Shown here: piece after piece, positions 1 to 15,902 of the stretch
Position numbering within the stretch: position 1 is the stretch's first letter
Layout of the letters: the number at the start of each line of letters is the position of its first letter
Assembly (NCBI RefSeq): GCF_006345805.1
Contig: NW_021825336.1
Location: 1-15,902 of the forward strand
Length of the DNA: 15,902 bases
Source of the DNA: Octopus sinensis
Lineage: Eukaryota
Reading direction: 5' to 3'
Made by a program: the position numbers and the translations under genes
Notes under the pieces: model-generated
Databases searched by the model: none
Seen by the model: the letters and a program-made list of their open reading frames with translations, nothing else
Told to the model about the DNA's origin: nothing

Positions 1-166
1 ATAGCAGGCCTGTTTTTTAATTGAAGCCAAACTTAAGAACAGCTGCAGTGCCTTTTAAAAAGCATAACACAGTCTAAAATAAACTTGGAAAGGTCAAAAA
101 AAAAGAAATGGTTGGTTGTTATATGGTTTTTCTAGTGTTATTCCTCTTTCTTCGACTCAATCATAA

Positions 167-436
167 ACACACACACACACACACCACACACACACACACA
201 CAATGACAGCAACAACACCATAAAGCTATAACTTGAAATTGTTTTTAACTTTCCAAACTTGTGACTCAAAGATAGAAAAGTAAAATAGACGGCGTGGAAG
301 GGATGGGGGGGATGAAGAATGAGGTGGGGAAAAGAGAAGAGAATGGGAAAAAAATTTTTTTTTAAAGAAAGGAAAAAATATTCTTATTTTGGGAAAGAAT
401 CTGTTCGAAATAAAAATGTCTAGAAAGAGGGAAAAA

Positions 437-491
<55 letters not shown>
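167..491. repeat. (CA)n at about 167-201 and (TA)n at about 437-491
   Basis: Directly visible dinucleotide runs. Confidence 0.95.
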
Positions 492-493
<2 letters not shown>

Positions 494-978
494 GAGTAAA
501 TGGAACATGTTTAATAGGAAAATATTAAAGAAGTACCACAACAGCTCCGACATTATCAACGGTCGGGTGGCAGTAATGGGGGTTGTGTAGCCCTAGGCAA
601 GCCAGCCTCCACCCTTCGCCCCACGAGACAAACAGGCGGCATTTTGATTGTAACCATAAAGGCTACCCAGTAAAAGTAGTGGGTTTTAAGGAAGTAGCGG
701 TACGCTGAAGTCCATTAGGACAATGTTGGTAAAAAAGGAGAGTAGACGCTTTAAGATACTTCCACCACTGCGAACTGATGTTCTTTCCTTCCAAAACGAC
801 AGTGGAATGTAATTTGAAAGAACTTCGTTGTTATTTCTAGCAAGTCGATTGTCTTTATATAGCACTGGTTCTCAAACACCCATTTTTTTTAACCTTTTTT
901 TTTAACCCTTTTGATCCGTATTTTATTTAATGAGACCTCTATAGCCATTTGCTGTATTCTTTTAATCTTTTATTTCTT

Positions 979-1092
979 TCAGGCATTTGACTGTGGCCAT
1001 GCTGGAGCACCGCCTTTTAGTCGAACAAATCGACCCTAGGACTTGTTCTTTGTAAGCCTAGTTACTTATTCTATCAGACCCTTTTGCCAAGA
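979..1092 (-). mobile_element. SINE family A, 3' fragment only
   Basis: catttgactgtggccatgctggagcaccgccttttagtcga... matches 4340-4445 of the full-length copy and is the reverse complement of about 3730-3830. Confidence 0.85.
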
Positions 1093-1109
1093 GATCCCTG
1101 AAGACTGTT

Positions 1110-1330
1110 GTAATAATATCGATTTCGGATTTTGGGACAAGGCCAGCAAATCCAGGGGAGGGGTAAGTCGATTACATAGACTCCAATGCTCAAGTGTTAT
1201 TTTTATCGACCCTGAAGGATGAAAGGCGAAGTCGACCTCGGTGGAATTTGAACTCAGAACGTAAAGACGGATGAAATGCTGTTAAGCATTTTCACCAGCA
1301 TGGTAACGATTCTGCCAGCCCACCACCCTG
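1110..1330 (-). mobile_element. SINE family B, near full-length, diverged
   Basis: Shares the core gtcgacctcggtggaatttgaactcagaacgt and ggatgaaaggc with eight other units in the window. On the minus strand it has B-box GAGTTCAAATTCC and A-box-like TGGCAGAATCG. Confidence 0.85.
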
Positions 1331-1354
1331 AACCCTTCATAATAATATTAACCA

Positions 1355-1722
1355 GGAGGCGCAATGGCCCAGTGGTTAGGGCAGCGGACTCGCGGTTTCG
1401 ATTCCCAGACCAGGCGTTGTGAGTGTTTATTGAGCGAAAACACCTAAAGCTCCACGAGGCTCCGGCAGGGGATGGTGGTGAACCCTGCTGTACTCTTTCA
1501 CCACAACTTTCTCTCGCTCTTTCTTCCTGTTTCTCTTGTACCCGTATTTCAAAGGGGCCAGCCTTGTCACACTCTGTGTCACGCTGAATATCCCCGAGAA
1601 CTACGTTAAGAGTACACGTGTCTGTGGAGTGCTCAGCCACTTACACGTTAATTTCACGAGCAGGCTGTTCCGTTGATCGTATCAGCTGGGAACCTCATCG
1701 TCGCAACCGACGGAGTGCTCCT
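1355..1722 (+). mobile_element. tRNA-derived SINE family C (possibly OR1/OR2-like octopus SINE)
   Basis: Head GGAGGCGCAATGGCCCAGTGGTTAGGGCAGCGGAC with A-box TGGCCCAGTGG and B-box GTTTCGATTCC. The first ~200 nt are homologous to the inverted copy at 5805-6103. The family name is an inference. Confidence 0.85.
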
Positions 1723-1744
1723 ATCTATCTATAAATATAAACCA

Positions 1745-1775
1745 GAACAACAACAACAACAACAGCAATAATAAA
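1745..1775. repeat. (CAA)n tract just inside the intron downstream of the FUT8 exon donor
   Basis: aacaacaacaacaacaacaacagcaataata. Confidence 0.9.
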
Positions 1776-1794
1776 GTATCAACAAGGTACTCAC

Positions 1795-2032
1795 GTCCCC
1801 AAGTCCGGATGGAGTTTCCACTACGATCTGTGCAGCTATCACTGACAGGTTGGAAGACAGTCTCCCAGCCGCGTGTGGCGTAGCGCCAACCTTTCGATTC
1901 CAGCACCAAAGTTCGCTTGGTTGCGTAGGCCACGATTAGACAGTAGGTCACGTGATGTAATTGGCATCCATAACCACAGCCTTTGCTCAAGTTGCAGACT
2001 AACTTTTTAGCAGTTTTGCAATTGCGGGGATT
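1795..2032 (-). CDS. FUT8: Internal coding exon (238 nt, phase 0 start, phase 1 end) of alpha-(1,6)-fucosyltransferase, core fucosyltransferase family GT23
   Basis: Translates [79 protein letters not shown]. This aligns without gaps to human FUT8 [72 protein letters not shown] (recalled from memory). Acceptor TTTATTTTCAG|AAT at 2033/2032; donor GGAC|GTGAGT at 1795/1794. The ATG-started 111-aa ORF in the track runs into intron on both sides. Confidence 0.96.
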
Positions 2033-2054
2033 CTGAAAATAAATAAATAAAAAC

Positions 2055-2055
<1 letters not shown>

Positions 2056-2090
<35 letters not shown>

Positions 2091-2160
2091 TAATGATAAT
2101 AATAATAATAATAATAATAACAACAATAACAATAATAATAACAATAATAATAATAATAAT
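2056..2160. repeat. (AAT)n microsatellite of about 105 nt with AAC/GAT interruptions, next to the FUT8 splice acceptor
   Basis: Directly visible. Confidence 0.95.
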
Positions 2161-2548
2161 AAGGCGAAAGAATTTGACAAGCTCAGAAAATATAAAGACT
2201 TGCCCATTGAGGCGGTTACAATACCAGTGCTCGTAGGAGCACTAGGAATGATCAAGAAGGGAACCGAAAATTATATCAGAATGATCCCTGGCTTACCATC
2301 CCTGCAAGAAGTGCAAAAGATTGTCTTAACTGGTACATCACACGTATTGAGAAGAGCATTGTCGATGTGAGAACTATTACTACCCATGTATTTTAATTTA
2401 ACTTTATTCCTATAAAAAAAAATGAACGAACTAGTGAGTTTAGTTTAATGGCCTACCAATGTATACAATGAGTTTCTTTGCCCTGGGAGTCGGGAAGACA
2501 CTTGGCAAGAAATGGAAGCAAATTTGAAAGAAGAAGAAAAACCCATAA
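2161..2548 (+). mobile_element. 5'-truncated non-LTR retrotransposon 3' end with restriction-like endonuclease C-terminus, R4/Dong-like
   Basis: Stop-free frame 2161-2370: [69 protein letters not shown]. It has the K..KY-DL, PV-VGALG and QK..L.GT..LR motifs typical of RLE-type LINE C-termini. A 3' UTR follows, and (AAT)n lies on both sides, the known target of Dong/R4 elements. Confidence 0.85.
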
Positions 2549-2733
2549 ATAATAATAATAATAATGGCTTCAAATTTTGCCACAAGGGCAGCAGTTTTGG
2601 GGGGAGGGAATGAGTCGATTATATCGACCCTAGTGTTCAACTGGTACATATTTTTATCGAATCCAAAAGGACGAAAGGCAAAGTCGACCTCGGTGGAATT
2701 TGAACTCAGAACGGAGCGATGGGCAAAACACCG

Positions 2734-2738
<5 letters not shown>
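2549..2738 (-). mobile_element. SINE family B, 5'-truncated, with (ATT)n tail
   Basis: Family B core at 2615-2715; tail cttcaaattttgccacaagggcagc ending in (AAT)n. Confidence 0.85.
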
Positions 2739-2769
<31 letters not shown>

Positions 2770-3443
2770 ACCACACCGTAGAAAATGAATCACTGATAAA
2801 CAAATAATAGAACATATGGGGGAAAATAAGTTTCGTTTTGGGACCTGCTAAGTTGTGTTGAAGATTCAATGGGCATAATGGATGGCCGCGGGGTCATACT
2901 TTTGTAGTACTAGCAGAATCTTTCAGTGATCGCTGACCCATGTTACCAGAGATCAATTCGTGTAAAAAAAAACGTGACTCGGTTCGCAATTTGTGCACCG
3001 TGTTATTCTCAGATCAGTGATAAATAAATCAGTGATAAACAAGTATGCATGTGTAAGTCTTATTTTTATTGAAGAAAATATACAACTCATCGTTGTCTGT
3101 TGCCAGGAACTTGTTTAATATGTATATTGGTGTATTGGTTGTGTTAACACGGCTAAAACTAGTGGGGTATTTAAGCAAAGTGTTCGTGGATGGTTAATAA
3201 GTTGATGTGCTCTGATGACAGAATAACTCTCGAAATATGTATATACATCTGTTACTTATTTTTTTCTATCTTTGATCACATTGTTTCCATATACGGATTC
3301 ATTTGCGAAACATTGTAAATTTCAGAGCTGGCTCTAAATTCTACGGAAAATTTATAGAGAAAAGCTAAGACAGACGATTGCTTTCTTCTTTGGAAAATCG
3401 TTTGGATCTTTTCGGTTTCACAGTCCAGATCCAAACTTTTTTG

Positions 3444-3852
3444 GGAGTGGCTGTGTGGTAAGTAGCTTGCTAACCAACCACATGGTTCCGGGTTCAGTCC
3501 CACTGCGTGGCATCTTGGGCAAGTGTCTTCTGCTATAGCTCCGGGCCGACCAAAGCCTTGTGAGTGGATTTGGTAGACGGAAACTGAAAGAAGCCTGTCG
3601 TATATATGTATATATATATATATATAAGTGTGTGTGTACGTGTTTGTGTGTCTGTGTTTGTCCCCCCTAGCATTGCTTGACAACCGATGCTGGTGTGTTT
3701 ACGTCCCCGTCACTTAGCGGTTCGGCAAAAGAGACCCGATAGAATAAGTACTGGGCTTACTAAAGAATAAGTCCCGGGGTCGATTTGCTCGACTAAAGGC
3801 GGTGCTCCAGCATGGCCGCAGTCAAATGACTGAAACAAGTAAAAGAGTAGAG
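3444..3852 (+). mobile_element. tRNA-derived SINE family A, full-length
   Basis: Head GGAGTGGCTGTGTGGTAAGTAGCTTGC...GGGTTCAGTCCCACTG (A/B boxes), internal (AT)/(GT) tract and AAAAGAGT-type tail. Near-identical to the inverted copy at 4305-4715. Confidence 0.92.
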
Positions 3853-3857
3853 TGGTG

Positions 3858-3932
3858 AAGGCGTGGGTGTGTGGTCAAGATGCTTGCTTTCCAACCACAT
3901 GGGCCGCAGTTCAGTCCCACTGCATGGCACTT
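3858..3932 (+). mobile_element. SINE family A, head-only diverged fragment
   Basis: ggcgtgggtgtgtggtcaagatgcttgctttccaaccacatgg...gttcagtcccactgcatggcactt parallels 3444-3515. Confidence 0.75.
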
Positions 3933-4024
3933 TACAAAAATTACTCGAGGAAACAACTGGAAGGGTTGAGCATATTTCTTTGATCTCAGTAACACAAACT
4001 ATTTGAGTGATAATAATTAGTATC

Positions 4025-4057
<33 letters not shown>

Positions 4058-4304
4058 AGAAAAGAGAGAAAGCGAAAGAGAGAGAGAGAGAGAAACCGAC
4101 CTCCGCAAGCACGAAGCAGGTCGTTGACATTCAGGATTAAAAAAGAAATCGTCTTTAAAAGCATTGATATTTTCTAGCAATCTTGGGAAATATACGAGGG
4201 CGGAATAAACATGAACACACACACATATATATATGCACATACACACACATATATGAACATATACATATTCATACATATATACACATACACAAACAATTAT
4301 ATAT

Positions 4305-4715
4305 ACTCTTTACTCTTTTTACTCTTTTACTTGTTTCAGTCATTTGACTGCGGCCATGCTGGAGCACCGCCTTTAGTCGAGCAACTCGACCCCGGGACTT
4401 AGTCTTTGTAAGCCCAGTACTTATTCTATCGGTCTCTTTTGCCGAACCGCTAAGTGACGGGGACGTAAACACACCAGCATCGGTTGTCAAGCAATGCTAG
4501 GGGGACAAACACAGACACACAAACACACACACGCATACATATACATATATACGACAGGCTTCTTTCAGTTTCCGTCTACCAAATCCACTCACAAGGCATT
4601 GGTTGGCCTGAGGCTATAGTAGAAGACACTTGCCCAAGATGCCACGCAGTGGGACTGAACCCGAGACCATGTGGTTGGTAAGCAAGCTACTTACCACACA
4701 GCCACTCCTGCGCCT
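4305..4715 (-). mobile_element. tRNA-derived SINE family A, full-length
   Basis: Reverse complement begins AGGCGCAGGAGTGGCTGTGTGGTAAG and ends in (AAAAGAGT)n. About 95% identical by eye to 3444-3852. Confidence 0.92.
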
Positions 4716-4719
4716 ATTT

Positions 4720-4963
4720 CATCATCATCATCATCGTTTAGCGTCCGCTTTCCATGCTAGCATGGGTTGGACGGTTCAACTGGGTCTGGGAAGCCAGAAG
4801 GCTGCACCAGGCCCAGTTTGATCTGGCAATGTTTCTACGGCTGGATGCCCTTCCTAACGCCAACCACTCCATGAGTGTAGTGGGTGCTTTTTATGTGCCA
4901 CCGGCACGGGGGCCAGGCGAGGCTGGCAACGGCCACGAACGGATGGTGCTTTTTACGTGCCAC
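4720..4963 (-). mobile_element. Retroposon 3' portion (RTE-type tail) ending in (GAT)n
   Basis: Minus strand: GGTTGGCGTTAGGAAGGGCATCCAGCC ... AACCCATGCTAGCATGGAAAGCGGACGCTAAACGATGATGATGAT. It contains an internal duplication of GTGGCAC(G/A)TAAAAAGCACC. The RTE affinity is an inference from the 3' hairpin plus tandem tail. Confidence 0.65.
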
Positions 4964-5422
4964 TTGTGTGCATATATATATATGTGATTGTGTGTGTGTG
5001 TATCTCTTTTGCAATAATGAAGCTCATATAAGTAAACAATGATGCATTGCTAAGACAGTGGAATGTTGGAATATTCCTTGCAGCAAGAGCAGCAAACGTA
5101 GAAATGTCACTGCTACAGACTTTCAGCGAATGTCACATAATTTCCACCTGTTTTGGCAACAACCAATCAAATACAGACTTCTTCCTTGCGAACAAGAAAC
5201 CTCGCAACTTGCAATTCTTTAAACAAATTTTTGCTGCTTTTTATTTTATAGCCGACGAAGTCTGTTAATGTGTGCCGAAGAGTTGAGAAGTTTTACTTGG
5301 CAATCCACGAAGGAGCCGGGTTCAATCCTGCTGAGTAGTGACGCACATTTTAATAAATGCTTTCTATCATATTTATAGCCTTGGAGAGACCCCCACCCCA
5401 AACACCGTAAGTGTAAAATAAC

Positions 5423-5460
5423 AGGCGCAGGCGTGGCTGCGTGGTAAGAAGTTTGCTTCT
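5423..5460 (+). mobile_element. SINE family A, extreme 5' head fragment
   Basis: caggcgcaggcgtggctgcgtggtaagaagtttgctt matches the head at 4680-4715 (reverse complement). Confidence 0.7.
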
Positions 5461-5804
5461 GATCCACTACATTGGGTGGGGTGGTACAATTTTTCAGCAG
5501 GTCAACACTATTCAATCCATCCTTTTTTTCTTCTTATTCAGACAATATGTGACTTGAAGAAAATTTAGTGTTATTTCAAGCAAGGTGGAGCGACCATGAA
5601 AAAGCACCATTTCATTCTTTTCAGAAATCTTCTGCATAACATCACTCGAGTATATTAAACATTTTATGAAACGAAGCATTTCTTACAAATAGAAAATAAT
5701 TACATTGGTCTGAGATTATGAGGTGGTGGTTCATGAGGTGCAGTGTGAGAATGATGATAATAGTGGAACAGGGGTGCAGTAGTGGTAATGTATGGAGAGT
5801 TATT

Positions 5805-6103
5805 GTTGTTTGTTCCTTCTCGAGCCATTCCTGGCTCATAAGGGCCGTTTTTTTGGCGTATAGGTTCCCCACCTGGACGGGATGCAGGTCTGTCGCAGGT
5901 GAGCTGCAAGATGCAGGAGGAAAGAGTGAGAGAAAGTTGTGGCGAAAGAGTCAGCAGAAGTTCTGCCATTACCTTCTGCCGGAGCCGCGTGAAGCTTAGG
6001 TGTTTCGCTCATAGACACACATACATCGCCCGGTCTGAGATTCGTACCCGCGATCCCTCGACCGCAAGTCCGCCGCTCTAACCACTAGGCCGTGTGCCTC
6101 CAC
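5805..6103 (-). mobile_element. tRNA-derived SINE family C with an alternative 3' tail
   Basis: Minus strand GGAGGCACACGGCCTAGTGGTTAGAGCGGCGGACTTGCGGTCGAGGGATCGCGGGTACGAATCTC. Homologous to 1355-1530, then diverges to a different tail ending in AACAACAATAAC. Confidence 0.85.
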
Positions 6104-6349
6104 TAATGTACAGAGAGACAAAAAAGAAAAATATGATGCAGTTACTCGTTTAATTCTGATTGAAGGGCGTATAGTCCCACCTGTTTACCTCAGTTTAAAT
6201 ATACCCCTTTACAGTAATATATGCGTAGATAAACAGAGAATCACACACAAACATGCAGGTGCACGAAAATGTGCATACACACACAGACGTTTCTCCTCAC
6301 CCATACACACGTTTTATTACACACTACCTCATTTGCTCTTCCATGCTTT

Positions 6350-6376
6350 CTCTCTATATATATATGTATGTATGTC

Positions 6377-6409
<33 letters not shown>

Positions 6410-6440
6410 TGTATGTAGTATGTATATGTATGTATGTGTG

Positions 6441-6526
<86 letters not shown>

Positions 6527-6566
6527 GTGTGTATATAGATATAAGATATATATATGTATATATATG

Positions 6567-6612
<46 letters not shown>

Positions 6613-6659
6613 GTGTGTATATATATATATTATAGATAATATTGTATATATATGTGTGT

Positions 6660-6700
<41 letters not shown>

Positions 6701-6790
6701 GTATATATATAACGTAAAGGAAGATATATTATTCTCTATTCTCCTTTCTGAGGTCTTGATTACATATACAATATATATATATATATAATG
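6350..6790. repeat. Compound (AT)n/(ATGT)n microsatellite block
   Basis: Directly visible; source of the IY/VCM pseudo-ORFs. Confidence 0.95.
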
Positions 6791-7129
6791 TTTCAGTCAT
6801 AGCACTGCGGTCATGCTGGAGCTCTGTGTGTTTGTGTGTGTATTTGTACACACGTACACACACGCGTGTATGCCCACGTAATACAAACATATTCTAATCC
6901 GTATGTGATAAAAAAAAACACATAAACATAGCCATAAACACACACAAACACAAGACGTTTGAAACAACGGGCTTTTACACAACAAGTTCTTTGGAAGAGG
7001 AAGAAAAATTTACATATCTGGATTATTCTAAGCATGCAAGGACATCAGCTGCTGTTGGTTGTTTATCGTTTGTTATCAACCATAAACTAATGTCATTACC
7101 GCACAGAGATACGCGCACATGTGATTAAG

Positions 7130-7149
7130 GGCGTGCGTGTGTGTGCATT

Positions 7150-7180
<31 letters not shown>

Positions 7181-7737
7181 CTGTATTATGTGCATTTGCC
7201 TTATTTGGTCTGAGAATATTGTTTGTATTAGGCGGTTATATGCGTACGTGCGTGAGCATAAAAATGTATGTCTGTGTGTGTGAATGAATGTGTGTGTGTG
7301 TTATGTGTATGTATGTGTGTGTACATATGTGTGTGTACGTGCATATGAAATGGATGTGTGTGTGAATTAATGTGTATGTGTGCACAAGCATATAAAATGT
7401 AGGTTTGTATGTGAATGATTGTGTATGTATGTATGTATGTGTGCACGTGCATATGAAATGTGTCTGTGTGTGTGAATGAATGTATGTATGTGTGCCTATG
7501 AAATGCGTGTCTGTGTGTGTAAATGAATGTGTATGTAAATGTGTGTGTGCACAAGCACAAGCATATAAAATGTATGTCTGTATGTGAATGTGTATGTATG
7601 TTCGTATGTATGTATGTGTGCACGAGCATATAAACTGTATGTGTGTGTATGTATGTGTGCACGAGCATGTGAAATGTGTGTTTGTGTGTGTGAATGAATG
7701 TGTATGTGTGCATGTAACGATATATATGTGCACAAGC

Positions 7738-7777
<40 letters not shown>
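7130..7777. repeat. TG-rich degenerate minisatellite with recurring GCATAT(A/G)AAATG and GTGTGAATG anchors
   Basis: About 9 anchor motifs spaced 40-70 nt apart in (TG)/(TATG) filler. Confidence 0.85.
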
Positions 7778-7778
<1 letters not shown>

Positions 7779-8142
7779 TAACTATCGGATAATACCAAGT
7801 TTGTCAAAGTTCAGCGGAGTGTATGTAATATCAGCGACGTTATCAGACCACAGGGAGGAAAAAAAAATAATAAAAGGGAGATATCTCCAAGCGATATCAA
7901 CCAATAACCAACAGGAGGAAGGATGTCAGTCGAAGATTTAGCTTCCAGAGAGATAGAATTCCACCTACCAACACCACCGCTGAGCACCACCACCGCTTCT
8001 CTCTCTCTTTCTCTTCTCTCTGATCCTTCTTGAATTTTCCAGAGATAAAACACGAAGCTCCAAGAACGTAGAGAATGGTTGAAGGTTTTTCCTTTTTTCT
8101 TTTTAAATCTAATGTGACTTCTCTTTTATTTTTACCAAAGAG

Positions 8143-8520
8143 GATGATGGTGATGATGGTGGTGGTGGTGCTCAGGGTGACGAGAAATACAGCGGCAGCG
8201 ACGATAATGACGATTACAATGATTGGGGTAGTGGTGGTAGTAGTATTAGTAGTAGTAGTGGTGGTGGTTGTGGTGGCGATGGTAGTAGTCGTGGTCTTAG
8301 CAATGGTGGTGGTGGTGGTAGTAGTAGTGGTGGTGATGGTAATAGTAGTGATAGTGATGATAGTAGTAGCCGTGGTCTTAGCAATGGTAGTGGTGGTGGT
8401 AGTAGTAGTGGTGGTAATAGTAGTGTTGGTGGTAGTAGTAGTAGTGATGATGGTAGTAGTCGAGGTCTTAGCAGTGGTAGTGGTGATGGCGGTAAATGAT
8501 GAGGATGATGGTGACGAGCG
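8143..8520. repeat. Compound GGT/AGT/GAT trinucleotide tract with three copies of CG(T/A)GGTCTTAGCA(A/G)TGGT
   Basis: Motif at 8290, 8371 and 8461 (periods 81 and 90 nt). Confidence 0.9.
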
Positions 8521-8610
8521 TGAGCAATGAAATTGTTTTGTTTTTGTTTTTAAACACGTGCAAGGGACCCTTGTGAAATCGGTCCCAGGATCTGATTCAT
8601 TTTTTTAATC

Positions 8611-8760
8611 TCTTTCACTTGTTTTAGTCATTAGATCGCGGCCATGCTGGGGCACCACCTTGAAGAATGTTTAGTCTAAACGAATTGACTCCAGTACTTA
8701 TTTATATTTTAAGTCTGGCACTCATTCTATCGATATCTCTTGCTGAACCGCTACGTTAGT
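8611..8760 (-). mobile_element. SINE family A, old diverged 3' fragment
   Basis: cacttgttttagtcattagatcgcggccatgctggggcaccacc...gaaccgctacgtta parallels 4325-4455. Confidence 0.7.
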
Positions 8761-8914
8761 TATTTTATCAAAATTACAACGCAATGACAGCAGTTGGAGT
8801 GGAGAGGCATCACTCAATGAAATCCACTCCAATTAATTATCGATCTTAGACGAAACGAAAATGCAGAAAAGTCATTTGTTCGATGTGCTAACGATTACAG
8901 AAGGCCATCGATTT

Positions 8915-9292
8915 TGAGAGGAAGAGATTAGCTGATACCATCGATTTGCGGTACTTGACCGGTACTTTATTTTATCGACCTCGGAAGGATGAAAAGCGAA
9001 GCTGACCCCAGCGAGACTTGAATCCAGGAAGTAAAGCGTCTAAAGAAATACCTATTTCTTTACTACCCACAAGGGGTTAAACACAGAGGGGACAAACAAG
9101 GACAGACAAACGGAATAAGTCGATTACATCGACGCCAGTGCGTAACTGGTACTTAATTTATCGACCCCGAAAGGATGAAAGGCAAAGTCGACCTCGGCGG
9201 AATTTGAACTCAGAACGTAACGGCAGACGAAATACTAAGAAATACTGCAAAGCATTTTGTCGGTGCTCTTACGATTCTGTTAACCCACCGCC
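8915..9292 (-). mobile_element. Nested SINE family B: diverged host (about 8915-9051 and 9236-9292) interrupted by a less diverged head-less unit (9052-9235)
   Basis: The inner unit matches the other B copies closely while the flanks are much more diverged. TAAAGAAATAC (9041-9051) and TAAGAAATAC (9236-9245) bracket the inner unit. Confidence 0.75.
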
Positions 9293-9311
9293 CTGCTGTT
9301 GTTGCTGTAAA

Positions 9312-9506
9312 CAAGCCAGTAATTGCGGGGATGGGGTTATGTCGATTACATCGACTCGACACCCCGGGGATCAACTGGTACTTATTTTATCGATCCGAAA
9401 AAATGAAAGACAACGTGACTCATTGACCTCGACGGCATTTGAACTCAGAACGTAAAGTCGGAAGAAATGCTACTCAGCATTTTATCCGGTGTGCTAATCC
9501 ACCGCC
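9312..9506 (-). mobile_element. SINE family B, diverged near full-length
   Basis: gtcgattacatcgac...caactggtacttattttatcgat...gacctcgacggcatttgaactcagaacgtaaag...ccaccgcc. Confidence 0.8.
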
Positions 9507-10364
9507 ATGATAATGATGATGATAGTTTCTATCGGTGACGAAGGTCTAAAAAAATACAAGGATGTAATGCAAAACAAGGTACATAATTTGAGTAAAAAAG
9601 AGGCCAGGAAAAACAAACAAAAAAAGAAAGAAAAGGAAATATAACAATAAGATTTCAACAAACTTTCCCTTACAGAAGGGAGAACCATCAAGGGTGATTC
9701 AGGGATAAAACCCACAAAAAAAAAAAAGATCCAAATTACTCTACCATATATCCAAGCCATCAAATGAAATGCTTTTTCTCAGTTTTCCCCAACTCCGTAA
9801 AGCATATTCAGGGTGAACCCATTTGATACTCACTAATCTCTCCCCTTTCGTTCCACACAAAAATCAGTACCTCCTTCCCCCTCTACTCTCACCTTCCTCT
9901 TCAAGAAGTTCCATGAGTGCTTGGCCAGATTGGAAAATACCTGTCTTCAAACTTCTCAAACGAATCCACCAAGCAACGCCACAGCCACGAAAACCGAGGA
10001 AGACTGACCACCCCTTAGCTGCCAAAGGTCGATGGCACGTTGATTCGTCCTACACGTAACAGTAGCTGATCAGCACTAGCCTACATATCGCTAATACACA
10101 GACACTGAACGATAGCGTACACCTCACATATCTCAGACAGGTTATGCCCCAACCTCACTGAAGCACTGCTATGTCAAAGACTTTTGGGAGTTGTACATAA
10201 TCTTCGACTTGAAAGTCCACCGAAAGAGAGCTCAGACTATTCATGTCAACACCCTGAGTCACTCCCAGGACATCGTCGCTCATATCTTCAACAAACACGT
10301 TATTGAAATCCAAAGTTGTCTTCCTATCGATGGCATTGTCTAGCTGTTAAATTAGAGGAGCCTA

Positions 10365-10758
10365 CGGGGTGGGTCTATACAGAAGGCATCTACTTACAGG
10401 TGTCAATCTATCCAATAAGCATCTATCAAGTGTTGGTCTATTCACTAGGTATCTAACGACAGCTGTTGGTCTATCCAGAAGGCATCTGTCTACTAGTTTT
10501 GCTCTATCCAATAGGTATTTATCTACAAGTGTTGGTCTATCCTATAGACATCTATCTACAGGTGTTGGTCTATCCTATAAGTACCTATCTACAGATACCA
10601 GTCTATCATGTAGGCATGTATCTACAGGTGTTAGTCTATCCCACAGGCATCTATCTACGAATGTTGGTCTACCTACAGATGTTGGTCTATCCAATAGGCA
10701 TCTTACTGAGAGCTGTTGGTCTATCCAGACATTATCTATCGACAGTTCTTGGTCGATC
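10365..10758. repeat. 33-bp minisatellite, about 12 copies, consensus GTGTTGGTCTATCCAATAGGCATCTATCTACAG
   Basis: Units aligned by eye: mostly 33 nt, with one 30-nt, one 18-nt and one 34-nt unit. A further degenerate unit lies at about 10867-10900. Confidence 0.92.
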
Positions 10759-11849
10759 CAGTTGGAAATTTTCTACAAGTGTTTATGAATTACAGATATG
10801 TAAGCAGTACCATGGTCATACTCGATTTTTTTTTCAAAAGATAACAATCTGCATGATTATGATGAGGTGTTGGTCTATCATTAAGATTACTACAAGTTGA
10901 TGGTCTTATTCTTGTCAACCAACAGCTTTACAAGGGGCATGGTGAACCATTTCCACATTTCTGAAGAACAGAAGATTCTTGGAATATTGCAATAATACTG
11001 GGAGACAAGATACGGAGATAGATCGATAGACAGACAGATGGATATATGGACAGAGAGAGAAAGAAAGAGAGAGGATGAAAGAGCTGCAATATTTGGGTGA
11101 TATCATAATAACACGGCACAGGAAATGACTGCGGTCAAAATATGGATGTCTTCTGAATCTTAATAACACAGGAAATAAATAAATGAACGAAGAAATGATG
11201 ATGATGATGATGATAATGATTTTACAGAAAGAGAAAGTGAAAGTAAAAAAAAAAAAAAAAGAAAAGAAATTTGAATAAAATCAGGCCCTTGCCAAAGACA
11301 GTCTTTTCTGATCTGATATACTGAATCTTATAATTAAAAATAGAAGGGGCCTGAGAAAACGAAGGGGGGAAGTGATGGTGGAGGAAAGCGAATTTGCAGT
11401 GTAGTGGGTGAGGGCGATGTGGTGAGATGAAGAAAGGTTTAGGAGGAAAGAGAGCGGGAGAGAGTGAGAGAGAGAGAGAAGTAAAAATGAAGTCTGTATA
11501 AAAGATAAAGAGATATTTAACATAACAAAATGTAGAATCAATCATTTATCAAGCTAGCAATTTGCGAAAGTCATTAAGATTTATAAGCGAAGGAAATAAG
11601 GAGAAGAAGAAAGAGAACGCGGTGGTGCCAAAGTGGTGGCGATGGCGGCAACGCTACGAAGAAGATGGTGGTATGAGAGTGACACGGGAGGAAGGCGGAA
11701 AAACTTGAGAGAGAGAGAGAGAGACAACAGCGAGGTCGGTGGAGCAGAGAGAGAGAGAGAGAATCTATGTTGTCTAAATTGGCAAGGTAAGTGGGTGGAT
11801 GGGGAGACACATACAAAAATAAGAAAAAAATACTATAAAAATGCACGAC

Positions 11850-11851
<2 letters not shown>

Positions 11852-11896
<45 letters not shown>

Positions 11897-12245
11897 CCTT
11901 TCTACTAAAAAGTCACGAGGCCTGAAATTCTGGGGTTGGGAGCTAGTGGATTACATCGACCCCAGTGTTTCACTGGTACTTGATTTATCGACCCCCGAAA
12001 GGATGAAAGGCAAAGTCGACCTCGGTGGAATTTGAACTCCGAACATAAAGACAGACGAAATACCTATTACTTTACTACCCACACGGGGCTAAACACAGAG
12101 AGGACAAACGGATTAAGTCGATTATATCGACCCCAGTGTGTAACTGGTACTTAAGTTAATCGATCCCGAAAGGATGAAAGGCAAAGTCGACCTCAGCGGA
12201 ACTTGAACTCAGAACGTAATGACGGACGAAATATCGCTAAGCATT
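11852..12245 (-). mobile_element. Composite SINE family B: host 3' part with (ATT)n tail (11852-12063), head-less unit (12064-12234), short host head remnant (12235-12245)
   Basis: Two B cores in tandem joined at gacgaaatac|ctattactttactaccc. Confidence 0.85.
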
Positions 12246-12269
12246 GTGAATAGATTACCATGTGGTACA

Positions 12270-12410
12270 CAGATTGTTGTGATGCATGTGCGTGGTATAC
12301 CCTTATCAGACGGGTAGTCATGATGGGTATACTGGGCTGCGTATATTTTACCCGAGTGTCCCTTTGATGGCATGCACTGCTCTCTCAATAATAATAATAA
12401 TAATAATAAT
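12270..12410 (+). mobile_element. Probable 3' end of an unclassified retroposon terminating in (AAT)n
   Basis: Non-repetitive segment ...gatggcatgcactgctctctcAATAATAAT. Single copy in this window; it resembles repeats I recall from octopus DNA. Unverified. Confidence 0.35.
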
Positions 12411-12625
12411 ATTGTCTACTATAGGCACAAGGCCTGAAATTTTTTTTGGGGGGGGGCAGTCGATTGGATCGATTCCAGTACGCAACTGGTACTTATATTA
12501 TCGACCCTGACAGGATGAAGGGCAAAGCCGACTTCGGTGGAATTTGAACTCAGAACGCAAGGACGGACGAAATGCCGCTAAGCATTTCGTCCGGCGTGCT
12601 AACGATTCTGCCAGCTCGCCACCTT
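12386..12625 (-). mobile_element. SINE family B, full-length
   Basis: Minus strand AAGGTGGCGAGCTGGCAGAATCGTTAGCACGCCGGACGAAATGCTTAGCGGCATTTCGTCCG...GAGTTCAAATTCC...ATTTCAGGCCTTGTGCCTATAGTAGACAAT(ATT)n. Confidence 0.9.
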
Positions 12626-12789
12626 AACAACAACAACAACAACAATGATAATAACCACAATAAATAAATAACTTCCGTGGTTATGAATATAAATAATAAA
12701 ACCAATATCTTTTATTATTTAATCAGTGACTGGTTTTCTATCGGGTATTTTGGGTAGGAACGGTAATAAGGGGGTGGGGGGTAGTGGAA

Positions 12790-13445
12790 TGGCATAGTGG
12801 CGGCGGCGGTGGTGGTGTAAATGATTGAAGTGATAGTTGTTGTTGTTGGTGTAGTGGCGGGGTGGTGGTGGTGGTGGTGGTGGGTGTAGTGGCGGGGTGG
12901 GGTGGTGTGTGTAGTGGCGGGGTGGAGGTGGTGTAGTGGTGGTGGTGGTGGTGGTTGTAGTGCGGGGTGGTGGTGGTGGTGGTGGTGTGTGTGTAGTGGC
13001 GGGGTGGTGGGTAGTGGCGGGGTGGAGGTGGTGTGTGGTGGTGGTGGTGGTGGTGTAGTGGCGGGGTGGGGGTGGTGTGTGTAGTGGCGGGGTGGAGGTG
13101 GTGGGGTGTAGTGGCGGGGTGGAGGTGGTGGTGGTGTAGTGGCCGGGTGGTGGTGGTATAGTGGCGGGGTGGAGGTGGTGGTGGTGTAGCGGCGGGGTGG
13201 AGGTGGTGTAGTGGCGGGGTGGAGGGTGGAGGTGGTGGTGGTGTAGTGGCGGGGTGGTGGTGGTGGTGTAGTGGCGGGTGGGGGTGGTGGTGTGTAGTGG
13301 CGGGGTGGAGGTGGTGGTGGTGTAGTGGCGGGGTGGAGGTGGTAGTGTAGTGGCGGGGTGGAGGTGGTGGTGTAGTGGCGGGGTGGAGGTGGTGGTGGTG
13401 TAGTGGCGGGGTGGTGCTGGTGGTGGTGGTGGTGTTTGGTAGTAG
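12790..13445. repeat. G-rich variable-unit minisatellite, about 20 copies of TGTAGTGGCGGGGTGG plus (AGG/TGG)n
   Basis: Core counted about 20 times between 12850 and 13415; unit length about 20-42 nt. Confidence 0.93.
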
Positions 13446-13639
13446 TAGTAGTTAACGATACTTAATGGTAACGAATGAAACGGTGGACGAAGATGTTTTT
13501 GTTTGTTGTTTAAGCAGACATATATGTATATGATCAAAGACATGATTCCAGCCATGACCTTCTCGTCCTTTTAAGGCTTATGTCTATAGTAACCTCATCA
13601 TCAAATGTGTCCAGAAGCCAACGTATTGATGTTAGCCAC

Positions 13640-13860
13640 GACTAGTAGTAGTAGTGGTGGTGGTGGTTGTAGTAGTAGTGTTGGTAGTAATTGTAGTAGT
13701 GGTAGTGTTGGTAGTAGTAGTAGTAGTAGTAGCGGAGGATTGGGGGTGGGGAACCTCAGCAGGATGGGTAAAGTCAAATAAAAGGACATTTACGACGATT
13801 CGATACAGAAAGTTATGAGGCAAGGAAAAAAAAACAAGCGGCTGCGATTTCCAATTAATA

Positions 13861-13909
<49 letters not shown>

Positions 13910-14139
13910 TACACACACTGCATTTCTGGAGATAGAGAAGTAAAAAAAAAAACAACTATGCACAAAAACATACAAGGAGAAAAAAGAATAATGCAGAAAA
14001 AAAACCTCAAAGATAAAAAAAAAACCCCAGCTAATTTGTTGTCGATATCGTAGCATTTATTGCAGTAAAAAGAAATGACAAAGTCTTTGATAAGCAATAC
14101 CAACATAAAAACTACATATATATATGCACACACACACAC

Positions 14140-14184
<45 letters not shown>

Positions 14185-14222
14185 GTGTGAGTATATATAT
14201 ATATTGCACATATATATATATG

Positions 14223-14263
<41 letters not shown>

Positions 14264-14420
14264 GCATATATATATATATGCACACACGTATATATATGCA
14301 TACATATATATATATATATATTTGCACACACATATATATATATATATATATGTGCATATATATATATATGCATATATGTGTGTGTATACATACACACACA
14401 AACGTGTGTATACCCACACA
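13640..14420. repeat. Microsatellite cluster: (GTA/GTG)n about 13640-13735, (CT)n(CA)n about 13865-13918, (CA)n/(AT)n about 14110-14420
   Basis: Directly visible. Confidence 0.92.
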
Positions 14421-14464
14421 CATAAAAGATGTACTCTATTTTATTCTTTTACAAGAATGGTTTT

Positions 14465-14531
14465 GATACTGACTTGGAAGTTTCGGTCTACTAGCCTTCA
14501 TCAGGCCGGAACTTCGAAGTCTCTGTCAGCA
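14465..14531 (-). ncRNA. Minimal hammerhead-ribozyme-like motif (Penelope-like element type), possibly degenerate
   Basis: Minus strand CTGATGA-AGGCTAGTAGACC-GAAAC-TTCCAA-GTC. Core CUGAUGA/GAAA, a GG..CC-closed stem II, a 2-bp stem III with a near-palindromic loop and a GUC triplet are present. Stem I is not evident in cis. Confidence 0.5.
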
Positions 14532-15022
14532 CTATTGTAAAAATAGGTCTATGTATTGTGTGTAGCTACACATATAATAGACAATAGACAAAAACGCGCT
14601 TCATCAATGGCATGTCTTAACGAAACAAACAAAAAGGCAAGAGGTGTATGTCAAAAAAGTGCTCAATAGTTCATTGAAATTAAAGCTATCGGGTCTATGA
14701 CAAAGGCTATGTGCAAAAAAGAGGAGGGAAAACTTAAGAATCTCGAATATACTATCCATATCTATATATATATATATAATATATAATATATAATATATTA
14801 TATATATAATATATATAGATATATATATATATATATTATAAGCCATAGACACGCATTATGCATTGTTATAAATCCGTCGAATAAAGGCCCGAAACATATG
14901 TACCGCTGAATCCTTGCATCATGTTTTTATTTTGATATATATGATATATATATATGTAGGTCCCGGGTTGAGTCGGGGTAAACCACAGTAAATAAGGTAC
15001 TCATACATAGCAGAGTAAAGTA

Positions 15023-15141
15023 ATTTATTTTATAGAAGGAGCTTCTACGGACTAGAACTGTTCATTCATATGAAATCTTCCTGAAGATTTCATCTGAATG
15101 AAACAGTTCTAGTCTGTAGAAGCTCCTTCTATAAAATAAAT
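15023..15141. repeat. 119-nt near-perfect inverted repeat (58/59-nt arms, 2-nt spacer)
   Basis: Arms 15023-15080 and 15083-15141 differ by 2 substitutions and a 1-nt indel. Confidence 0.95.
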
Positions 15142-15160
15142 ATATATTATATATATATAG

Positions 15161-15204
<44 letters not shown>

Positions 15205-15479
15205 AAGTGAGATAGGGGTTGTGAATGTACCCACTATGGATAACATTTTATCCAATATACTGGCAGTAAAGTACACTCTTATCTACAGCTGAAACAGCTT
15301 AAGATCCATTTTATATTATATGTTTGTTCTTATGGTATTATCTTACTCATTGATGTGTACAGTTTTATTCTGTTTCATTCTCTCTGGATGCTCCTAAATA
15401 ATTAGTTAATAAATTATATGAATTGGTATTATCTAGTAGTTGATGATTGATAAAAATCTATTCCTCCATTTTCTTATTT

Positions 15480-15521
<42 letters not shown>

Positions 15522-15548
15522 ATAATGATATACGGTGAGTGATTAATA

Positions 15549-15770
15549 GACTTAATCCTTTGTCTGTCCTTGTTTTGTCCTCTCTGTGTTTAGCCCCTTG
15601 TGGGTAGTAAAGAAATAGGTATTTCGTCTGCAGTTACGTTCTGAGTTCAAATTCCGCTGAGGTCGACTCTGCCTTTCATCCTTTCAGGGTCGATATAATC
15701 GACTTAAAACGTTTGTCTGTCCCTGTTTGTCCCCTCTGTGTTTAACCCCTTGTGGGCAATAAAGAAATAA
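15549..15770 (+). mobile_element. SINE family B tail + head-less unit + tail (about 70-nt terminal direct repeats)
   Basis: Tail GACTTAA...GTGGG(T/C)A(G/A)TAAAGAAATA at 15549-15617 and 15701-15769, with junction AAAGAAATA|GGTATTTCG. Confidence 0.88.
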
Positions 15771-15902
15771 ATATATATATATATGCCTGTATGTATCTAT
15801 CACCTGTATCGATCAGACTATAGGACGTTGTTACACGTTTCCTCCAATTCTTTCTCGACTGCATCCTTCTTTTTCGGTACAGATTGACTAAATAAATCGT
15901 CT

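Follow-up and report, generated by a model that had tools for sequence, protein, structure and literature searches.

A stretch of 15,902 nucleotides of the Octopus sinensis genome (RefSeq assembly GCF_006345805.1, contig NW_021825336.1, positions 1 to 15,902; hereafter the window) raises the question of why the 3' tail of a short interspersed element (SINE) should be fused to the same internal nucleotide of SINE heads at three separate loci. The initial annotation saw in this joint either a parasite of SINEs that inserts site-specifically into resident heads or a unit copied from a circular RNA. The shared joint is most likely a by-product of repeat copying and not a new kind of mobile element. 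To the specific proposal that the joints are ordinary products of SINE retroposition driven by a long interspersed element (LINE), with a hot spot for 5' ends in the SINE head, we give about an even chance. The window is AT-rich, microsatellite-laden animal DNA densely packed with SINEs, and the sample consists of about 11 family copies or fragments in one window of 15.9 kb; at this copy number the statistics on 5' ends are indicative only.

The joint, GTAGTAAAG(A/T)AATA|GGTATTTC, was found at three places in the window against an expectation of none. The 22-mer GTAGTAAAGWAATAGGTATTTC gave exactly three matches, at 9045-9066 and 12057-12078 on the minus strand and at 15604-15625 on the plus strand, and none of 200 dinucleotide-preserving shuffles contained a match, which bears out the claim of the same junction at three loci. 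Both sides of the joint are SINE sequence: alignments and an nhmmer map place a 3' module that we call tail-2 upstream and the family body from GG(T)ATTTCG downstream. In the intact copy at 12406-12625 (copy A) about 48-50 nt of head precede the breakpoint, more than the 40 nt first reported, and the breakpoint falls, as had been stated, between the A-box-like TGGCAGAATCG and the B-box-like GAGTTCAAATTCC. The joints fall into two classes. Locus 1 is a nested insertion of one unit (F) into an older copy, and loci 2 and 3 are head-to-tail pairs (G with H, and I with J).

The family to which these units belong ('family B') was mapped over the window with an nhmmer profile, and I and J are on the plus strand and all other copies and fragments on the minus strand. 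Copy A (profile match 12406-12602, the head extending to 12625) serves as the full-length reference and has a head with A and B boxes, a 13-bp hairpin, an ordinary tail (tail-1) and (ATT)n. In the intact copies A and B (1116-1306) the two boxes stand about 50 nt apart, as judged by eye against the consensus, and A and B boxes at such tRNA-like spacing would constitute the internal RNA polymerase III (Pol III) promoter of a tRNA-derived SINE. The copies also resemble tRNA-derived SINEs in being short, interspersed and multi-copy (about 11 in 15.9 kb) and in having (ATT)n tails. The head itself has no recognizable likeness to a tRNA, as ARAGORN detected no tRNA in the window and the Rfam tRNA model did not match the head even at E<=10; its dominant feature is the 13-bp hairpin.

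The two kinds of tail are related. Tail-1 reads ..GGCCTTGTG.CTATAGTAGAAAGG and is followed by (ATT)n, the ending found in A, B, C and H. Tail-2 (...GTTTGTC..CCCCTTGTGGGTAGTAAAGAAATA) aligns with tail-1 but has additional GTTTGTC repeats, and in every case it ends in ..AAAGWAATA(G) (end motif CTTGTGGGYARTAAAGWAATA, 3' end ..AAAGAAAUA(GG)). Two non-CpG sites divide the four tail-2 sequences into subtype 2a, with CCTCTC and TTTAGCCCC (G and I), and subtype 2b, with CCCCTC and TTTAACCCC (F and J). A 14-nt internal duplication, TGTCCTTGTTTGTC, is present in the tail-2 of F, I and J and absent from that of G (12100-12115). In J, tail-2 terminates the element beside non-SINE DNA and so can act as a 3' terminus. 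Units F, G, H and J all diverge from the family consensus by about 4-6%, which argues that they stem from one burst.

At locus 1 a single head-less unit has genuinely inserted into an older member of its own family, with which it shares orientation, and a target-site duplication (TSD) accompanies the insertion. The old host copy is split into a head at 9246-9293 and a remainder, E, at 8888-9051, both on the minus strand. The host head, in which the A box is now degenerate (TAACAGAATCG) and the 5' arm and loop of the hairpin are decayed, is recognized by the nhmmer head model (9294-9237, E 2e-17) and E by the family profile (9052-8888, E 6e-36). The tail-1-like end of E is truncated and leads directly into the old head fragment K (8859-8896, minus strand, detected with the head model). 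Between the two host parts lies F (9052-9235, minus strand), 184 nt and exactly one period long, which runs from GTATTTCG through tail-2b to AAAGAAATAG. F has 5 mismatches to the family consensus at 120 non-CpG positions (4.2%) and has lost 1 of 22 CpG bases. The corresponding counts are 32 of 120 (26.7%) for E (Fisher p = 1.3e-6 versus F) and 8 of 47 (17%) for the host head (p = 0.009), in which 4 of 11 CpG bases are lost. The annotated picture of a well-conserved 184-nt unit in a far more diverged host thus holds (4% versus 17-27%). A single young element composed of head and F with an internal 10-nt duplication was also considered and was ruled out by the 17% divergence and the 4 of 11 lost CpG bases of the head, compared with 4% in F.

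The repeats that bracket F read TAAAGAAATAC (9041-9051) and TAAGAAATAC (9236-9245) in forward letters, or, in SINE orientation, GTATTTCTTTA for the right copy and GTATTTCTTA for the left copy. They are one T apart, the left copy being the shorter (10 versus 11 nt). Because both contain the host-specific CTT(T)A where the family has CGTCC or CGTCT, they are two copies of host positions ~49-59 and hence a TSD, as had been suspected from the repeats around 9052-9235. The presence of these host positions twice is the signature of the staggered nicks of target-primed reverse transcription.

With its host head, duplication, unit, duplication and host remainder all in one orientation, locus 1 is exactly what would be expected if, as first proposed, A-box-less unit RNAs or tail-2 elements inserted just 5' of GTATTTC in resident heads, so that a Pol III unit would be rebuilt from the host A box and the B box of the insert. 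A relationship between tail and target is also hinted at by the bottom strand at the nick (TAAAGAAATAC), which is nearly identical to the tail-2 end, and by the perfect 10-bp palindrome, TAAAGAAATA-GG-TATTTCTTTA, that an inverted-repeat search detected in the F tail end plus the right TSD copy. In a more specific form of the proposal a processed, promoter-less SINE RNA of unit length, extending from a hairpin-loop cut at GGUAUUUCG to the tail-2 terminus, would preferentially re-enter SINE heads at the same motif and regain an A box, and the chimeras would be by-products. Were the head motif truly a target, one non-autonomous element would depend on another, a rare situation. We regard targeting of this kind as unlikely, doubt that promoters are rebuilt in this manner and consider the re-entry of a processed RNA improbable.

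The reasons lie partly at the other two loci. As a general account insertion into resident heads fits one of the three loci, since inspection of the sequence and the head profile revealed neither a family head nor a duplicated GTATTTC motif upstream of G or I, as a site-specific element would have left. H and J are head-less, yet no host head precedes them, and the four other family heads in the window (A, B, D and K) are unoccupied. (An old host head upstream of G, a 12/14 match by eye, was rejected as the homology detected by the head profile begins only at 12245.) The remaining reasons concern locus 1 itself. The host A box is degenerate today. The primer strand at the nick is nearly identical, not complementary, to the tail-2 end; the RNA 3' end (..AAAUAG) could pair with the primer strand (..AAATAC-3') only if the RNA continued into the following GUAUUUC, as it would in a multimeric template. 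The insertion site GTATTTCTTTA is the decayed 3' arm of the host's hairpin and is among the two or three most T-rich, (ATT)n-like 11-mers on the host sense strand, and thus resembles the AT-microsatellite targets usual for the family. Hence special targeting is not needed at locus 1. In this single case ordinary target preference can, judging from base composition, explain both the site and the orientation of the insert.

Loci 2 and 3 are built differently from locus 1, each having two SINE modules head-to-tail, as in dimeric SINEs, with a right module that lacks the first ~50 nt. At locus 2, on the minus strand, the upstream unit G (profile match 12060-12258) is a 5'-truncated SINE that spans 12064-12245, from AATGCTTAGCG in the hairpin 5' arm to tail-2a (...GTAAAGTAATAG), and is 5.0% diverged. 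It is joined to the head-less unit H (profile match 11892-12064), which occupies 11897-12063, runs from GTATTTCG to an ordinary tail-1 and is 5.9% diverged. The (ATT)n 3' microsatellite of H follows at 11850-11896 (Tandem Repeats Finder: period 3, 15.7 copies, 100% matches). At locus 3, on the plus strand, the upstream unit I (15544-15618) is a 5'-truncated remnant consisting of the end of the body and tail-2a only. The head-less unit J (15619-15769; profile match 15618-15774) again begins with GTATTTCG, has a 41-nt internal deletion and ends in tail-2b and (TA)n. The description of the units as head-less is therefore correct for F, H and J and not for G, which keeps its head back to AATGCTTAGCG (~12245). 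Likewise, the tail-unit-tail arrangement assigned to 15549-15770 is present in that the tail of I is followed by J with its own tail, although J is shortened by the deletion, which lies between two GTCGAT direct repeats (15690-15700). The 'LTR-like direct repeats' (LTR, long terminal repeat) reported there do not hold up, as the two tails are only 88% identical and of two subtypes.

Neighboring units at these loci were not copied from a single template. Identities between bodies are 0.95 for F-J, 0.91 for F-G, 0.89 for F-H and 0.86 for both G-H and H-J, so that a tail-2 unit is joined at locus 2 to a tail-1/(ATT)n unit with a body only 86% identical to its own, whereas F and J share 95% identity across loci. 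The tails at locus 3 differ at the two subtype sites, and each matches a tail at another locus. (Assignment of H to an older tail-1 group was considered and rejected, as the body of H is closest to that of F.) This difference between neighbors bears directly on the proposal that a unit RNA of ~184 nt circularizes tail-to-GGUAUUUC and undergoes rolling-circle reverse transcription into concatemers, in the manner of retrozymes, which are non-autonomous retroelements with hammerhead ribozymes and circular RNA intermediates. In such a unit-length circle the back-splice joint would be AAAUAGGUAUUUC. F is exactly one period long, the UAUUUC at the unit 5' end can pair in the predicted fold with the GAAAUA at the 3' end, and the locus-1 primer strand would pair over 7 nt with the GUAUUUC of a circular or multimeric template, which would explain the seamless 3' joint. 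The octopus unit is also like retrozymes in being short and non-coding, with one locus of repeat-unit-repeat appearance and one insertion of unit length. However, besides the unlike neighbors, the ribozyme models (hammerhead, twister, HDV, hatchet and pistol included) gave no family match at E<=1 over the whole window or at E<=10 at loci 1 and 2, and the fold of the unit RNA is no more stable than that of shuffled sequence (z = -0.59) and is not rod-like as in retrozymes. The flanking repeats differ from each other, insertion has left a signature of the LINE type (a duplication of 10-11 nt) and not of the LTR type, and loci have one or two units and never longer arrays. The circle is accordingly disfavored, and we think it highly improbable.

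Events at the level of DNA (unequal crossing-over, gene conversion or replication slippage between neighboring or dimeric SINEs) could also have made tandem units, and the same-orientation, head-to-tail SINEs found throughout the window would favor misaligned recombination. Homologous exchange would not, however, duplicate 10-11 nt of host at locus 1, nor would it place a 4%-diverged unit in a 17-27% diverged host with both boundaries exactly at the unit ends. Units within a locus are moreover less alike than units across loci. We judge such an origin very unlikely.

What the three joints do share is a position in a strong RNA structure. The head hairpin of 13 bp, CGGACGAAAUGCU-UAGC-GGCAUUUCGUCCG, was detected by an inverted-repeat search through its perfect 12-nt arms (12564-12575 and 12582-12593), and each of 200 shuffles folded less well (z = -3.36). 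Its 3' arm, GG(C/U)AUUUCG, has its first base exactly at the breakpoint. In head-profile coordinates the truncated copies begin at 19 (K), 40 (G), about 46 (C) and 50-51 (F, H and J), and I begins in the body. Three of the seven thus begin at one nucleotide (rough p ~7e-4), in agreement with the earlier argument that the shared breakpoint is not the result of random 5' truncation. Five of the seven begin within 12 nt of the hairpin apex (2735-2745, 12245, 9235, 12063 and 15619; p ~7e-6 for a pre-specified 12-nt window). Two of these five, C and G, are outside the reported head-less joint starts. C (profile match 2561-2744, minus strand) is a copy 5'-truncated in the hairpin loop that extends over 2561-2735 with AAGCGG as its first bases, and so provides one more 5' end at the apex. 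These positions point to a probable 5'-end hot spot at the hairpin, as opposed to a peculiarity of the three loci. The hairpin-arm motif GG(C/T)ATTT also resembles the family's own terminus (..AAAGG-ATT, ..AATAGG-TATT).

The surroundings of the copies suggest how the family inserts. ATT, GTT or ATC trinucleotide repeats form the 5' flanks of A, B and D (D, 9297-9497, minus strand). Locus 3 lies between (TA)n tracts; at locus 2 the 3' end is (ATT)15 and no repeat is recognizable upstream. At 8859-9520 (minus strand) SINEs are piled up in the same orientation: the tail of D runs directly into the host head of locus 1, and the truncated tail of the host runs directly into K. The pile-up continues with a SINE of another family at ~8580-8790. 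Tail-directed integration, these arrangements suggest, is general in this region. Pairing of a 3' microsatellite of the RNA with the nicked target is established for RTE-, CR1- and L2-type LINEs (PMC6007223), and ATT-like flanks, (ATT)n tails and head-to-tail pile-ups together are the behavior of SINEs with a partner LINE that uses such pairing. The octopus copies resemble the microsatellite-tailed SINEs mobilized by these LINEs in their 3' (ATT)n tail and ATT-like flanks and in the locus-1 duplication, which is 10-11 nt long and begins (G)TATTT, like the tail repeat. As a separate observation, an (ATA)35 microsatellite at 2057-2370 (plus strand) is followed by a 69-codon open frame that resembles the C-terminal end of a LINE protein and is not matched by any Pfam model; the untranslated sequence 3' of this frame closes with (AAT)n at ~2545-2565, adjoining the tail of copy C.

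The retroposition account that we favor would run as follows. Copying of the SINE RNA would tend to stop at the apex of the head hairpin, either because the RNA loop is broken or because the reverse transcriptase dissociates or switches templates there, and in three copies it would have stopped at exactly the first base of the hairpin 3' arm. If the resulting cDNA were then joined to target DNA, a plain head-less insertion with a TSD would follow, as at locus 1, where an older copy would have offered the same motif in decayed, T-rich form as the target, entered in the orientation usual at (ATT)n-like sites. If the cDNA were instead extended along another, tail-2-bearing SINE RNA from the 3' end of that RNA, a composite with the joint AAATA|GGTATTTCG would arise, as at loci 2 and 3, and insertion exactly at the end of a resident tail-2 would be equivalent. 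Composites could then be copied again as units. The likeness of GG(C/T)ATTT to the family terminus could favor joining exactly there. We infer template switching, as opposed to tail-directed insertion, as the route to the composites, and likewise the cause of the hot spot and the extent to which joints form anew and are not inherited from composite sources. Both composites have the makeup of a template-switch chimera, with a 5' part that stops at a natural 3' terminus and a 5'-truncated 3' part in the same orientation. Template switching by LINE reverse transcriptases is an accepted route to chimeric SINEs (PMC5729268), and two SINEs fused into a complex SINE form a recognized class (PMC3531059).

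Several observations weigh against this account. The sample, about 11 copies in one 15.9-kb window, is tiny. A LINE partner sharing either tail was not identified within the window, a point in which the family also differs from the known microsatellite-tailed SINEs. A reverse transcriptase would be expected to pause at the base of a hairpin and not at its apex, which leaves the cause of the hot spot unexplained. The 5' joint of locus 1 (CTTA|GTATTTCG) makes no use of the available 7-nt homology; homology-guided joining there was considered and rejected, as it would have collapsed the duplicated GTATTTC, of which both copies remain. A single duplication bracketing a chimera is the hallmark of one event, and at loci 2 and 3 no duplication that brackets the whole composites could be recognized, because the flanks there are microsatellites. 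Finally, the three joints have no extra or missing bases, which inheritance from one composite source explains more easily, and both upstream partners are of subtype 2a, which also fits a composite source copy.

The last two points lead to the alternative that a complete SINE and a 5'-truncated one fused by chance, on a single occasion or on very few, and that the joint has since been inherited within a composite subfamily. Source copies of the form head-unit-tail-2a-unit-tail would have multiplied, loci 2 and 3 would be 5'-truncated dimers and F would have been truncated at or near the joint. Such descent would account for joints that are base-identical at all three loci and for tail-2a in both upstream partners. 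It would also account for the three of four tail-2 ends in the window that are followed by a unit, as befits a mostly internal linker, and for the equal divergence of G and H (5.0% versus 5.9%, Fisher p = 0.78), and complex dimeric SINEs are well known (PMC3531059). Yet the right partners differ, being H with tail-1 and (ATT)n, J with tail-2b and, in E, an unrelated old host, so at least two types of source would be needed. Nor does a composite source account for the exact coincidence of the two ends of F with the joint and the tail-2 terminus, or for the start of other truncated copies (C and G) at the hairpin apex, and tail-2 works as a 3' end in F and J and not as a linker alone. We consider inheritance from composite sources possible, though somewhat unlikely.

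The complex SINEs compiled in SINEBase (Alu, B1-dID and Twin SINE; PMC3531059) likewise have two modules head-to-tail in one orientation, with a right module lacking a complete promoter, and the composite can be retroposed as a unit. In the octopus copies, by contrast, a single precise nucleotide at the hairpin apex marks where the right module is cut, a free-standing insertion has this end as well, and the left terminus is joined to at least two different right partners. The template-switch chimeras from which PittSINE originated (PMC5729268) are alike in that a cDNA truncated at its 5' end is extended on another RNA from the natural 3' end of the latter, with the two parts in the same orientation and a constant acceptor 3' terminus. 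They are unlike in that the donor truncation point varies in known cases and is fixed in the octopus copies. Elsewhere, template switching also yields U6-L1 chimeras and the end-to-end template jumps of R2.

No description of this structure was found in the literature searched, octopus repeat papers included, a search that did not extend to curated repeat libraries or to the first paper on octopus SINEs, and the composite may already be an annotated consensus. That first paper, by Ohshima and Okada in 1994, reportedly described the OK, OR1 and OR2 SINEs. A full-text literature search for the SINE sequences themselves returned nothing relevant, and a conceptual antisense peptide across the joint had no protein match. 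Metagenome contigs scanned for exact occurrences of the tail-2 end yielded four bacterial matches attributable to chance, and the SINE core pattern had no match in the genome or viral collections, which apparently contain no octopus assemblies.

SINEs make up about 4-12% of octopus genomes (PMC12988792, PMC13282606) and have been associated with both genome reshuffling and neural transcripts. A fixed breakpoint at the hairpin apex would mark where the reverse transcriptase of the partner LINE stops or switches templates, and would also explain the origin of new composite SINE families in this lineage. Repeat annotation that splits composites into separate fragments or families will miscount both copies and ages.

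The window has several other features. An exon of FUT8 (alpha-1,6-fucosyltransferase) lies at 1790-2035 on the minus strand (Pfam PF19745, FUT8_N_cat, E 6e-43); the closest database proteins are at most 80% identical and the exon's open reading frame itself is not on record. Given this one exon, the rest of the window would be intron or flank. A different SINE family is present as two copies, 3444-3849 and 4320-4708, that form a large inverted repeat with arms 90-100% complementary and ~470 nt apart, separated by a microsatellite-rich spacer. A third SINE-like family, with the tRNA-like start GGAGGCGCAATGGCCCAGTGGTTAGGGC..., occurs in both orientations (1360-1720, plus strand; 5800-6110, minus strand). 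Minisatellites were found at 12867-13428 (a 28-nt G-rich unit, ~21 repeats), 10372-10671 (a 33-nt unit, ~9 repeats), 7309-7770 (a TG/TA-rich array with units of ~106-173 nt) and 8231-8489 (a GGT/AGT-rich array). Between (AT)n tracts, a 40-nt inverted repeat (15023-15062 and 15102-15141, 98% complementary, 39-nt spacer) could be a small foldback element or the end pair of a miniature inverted-repeat transposable element (MITE).

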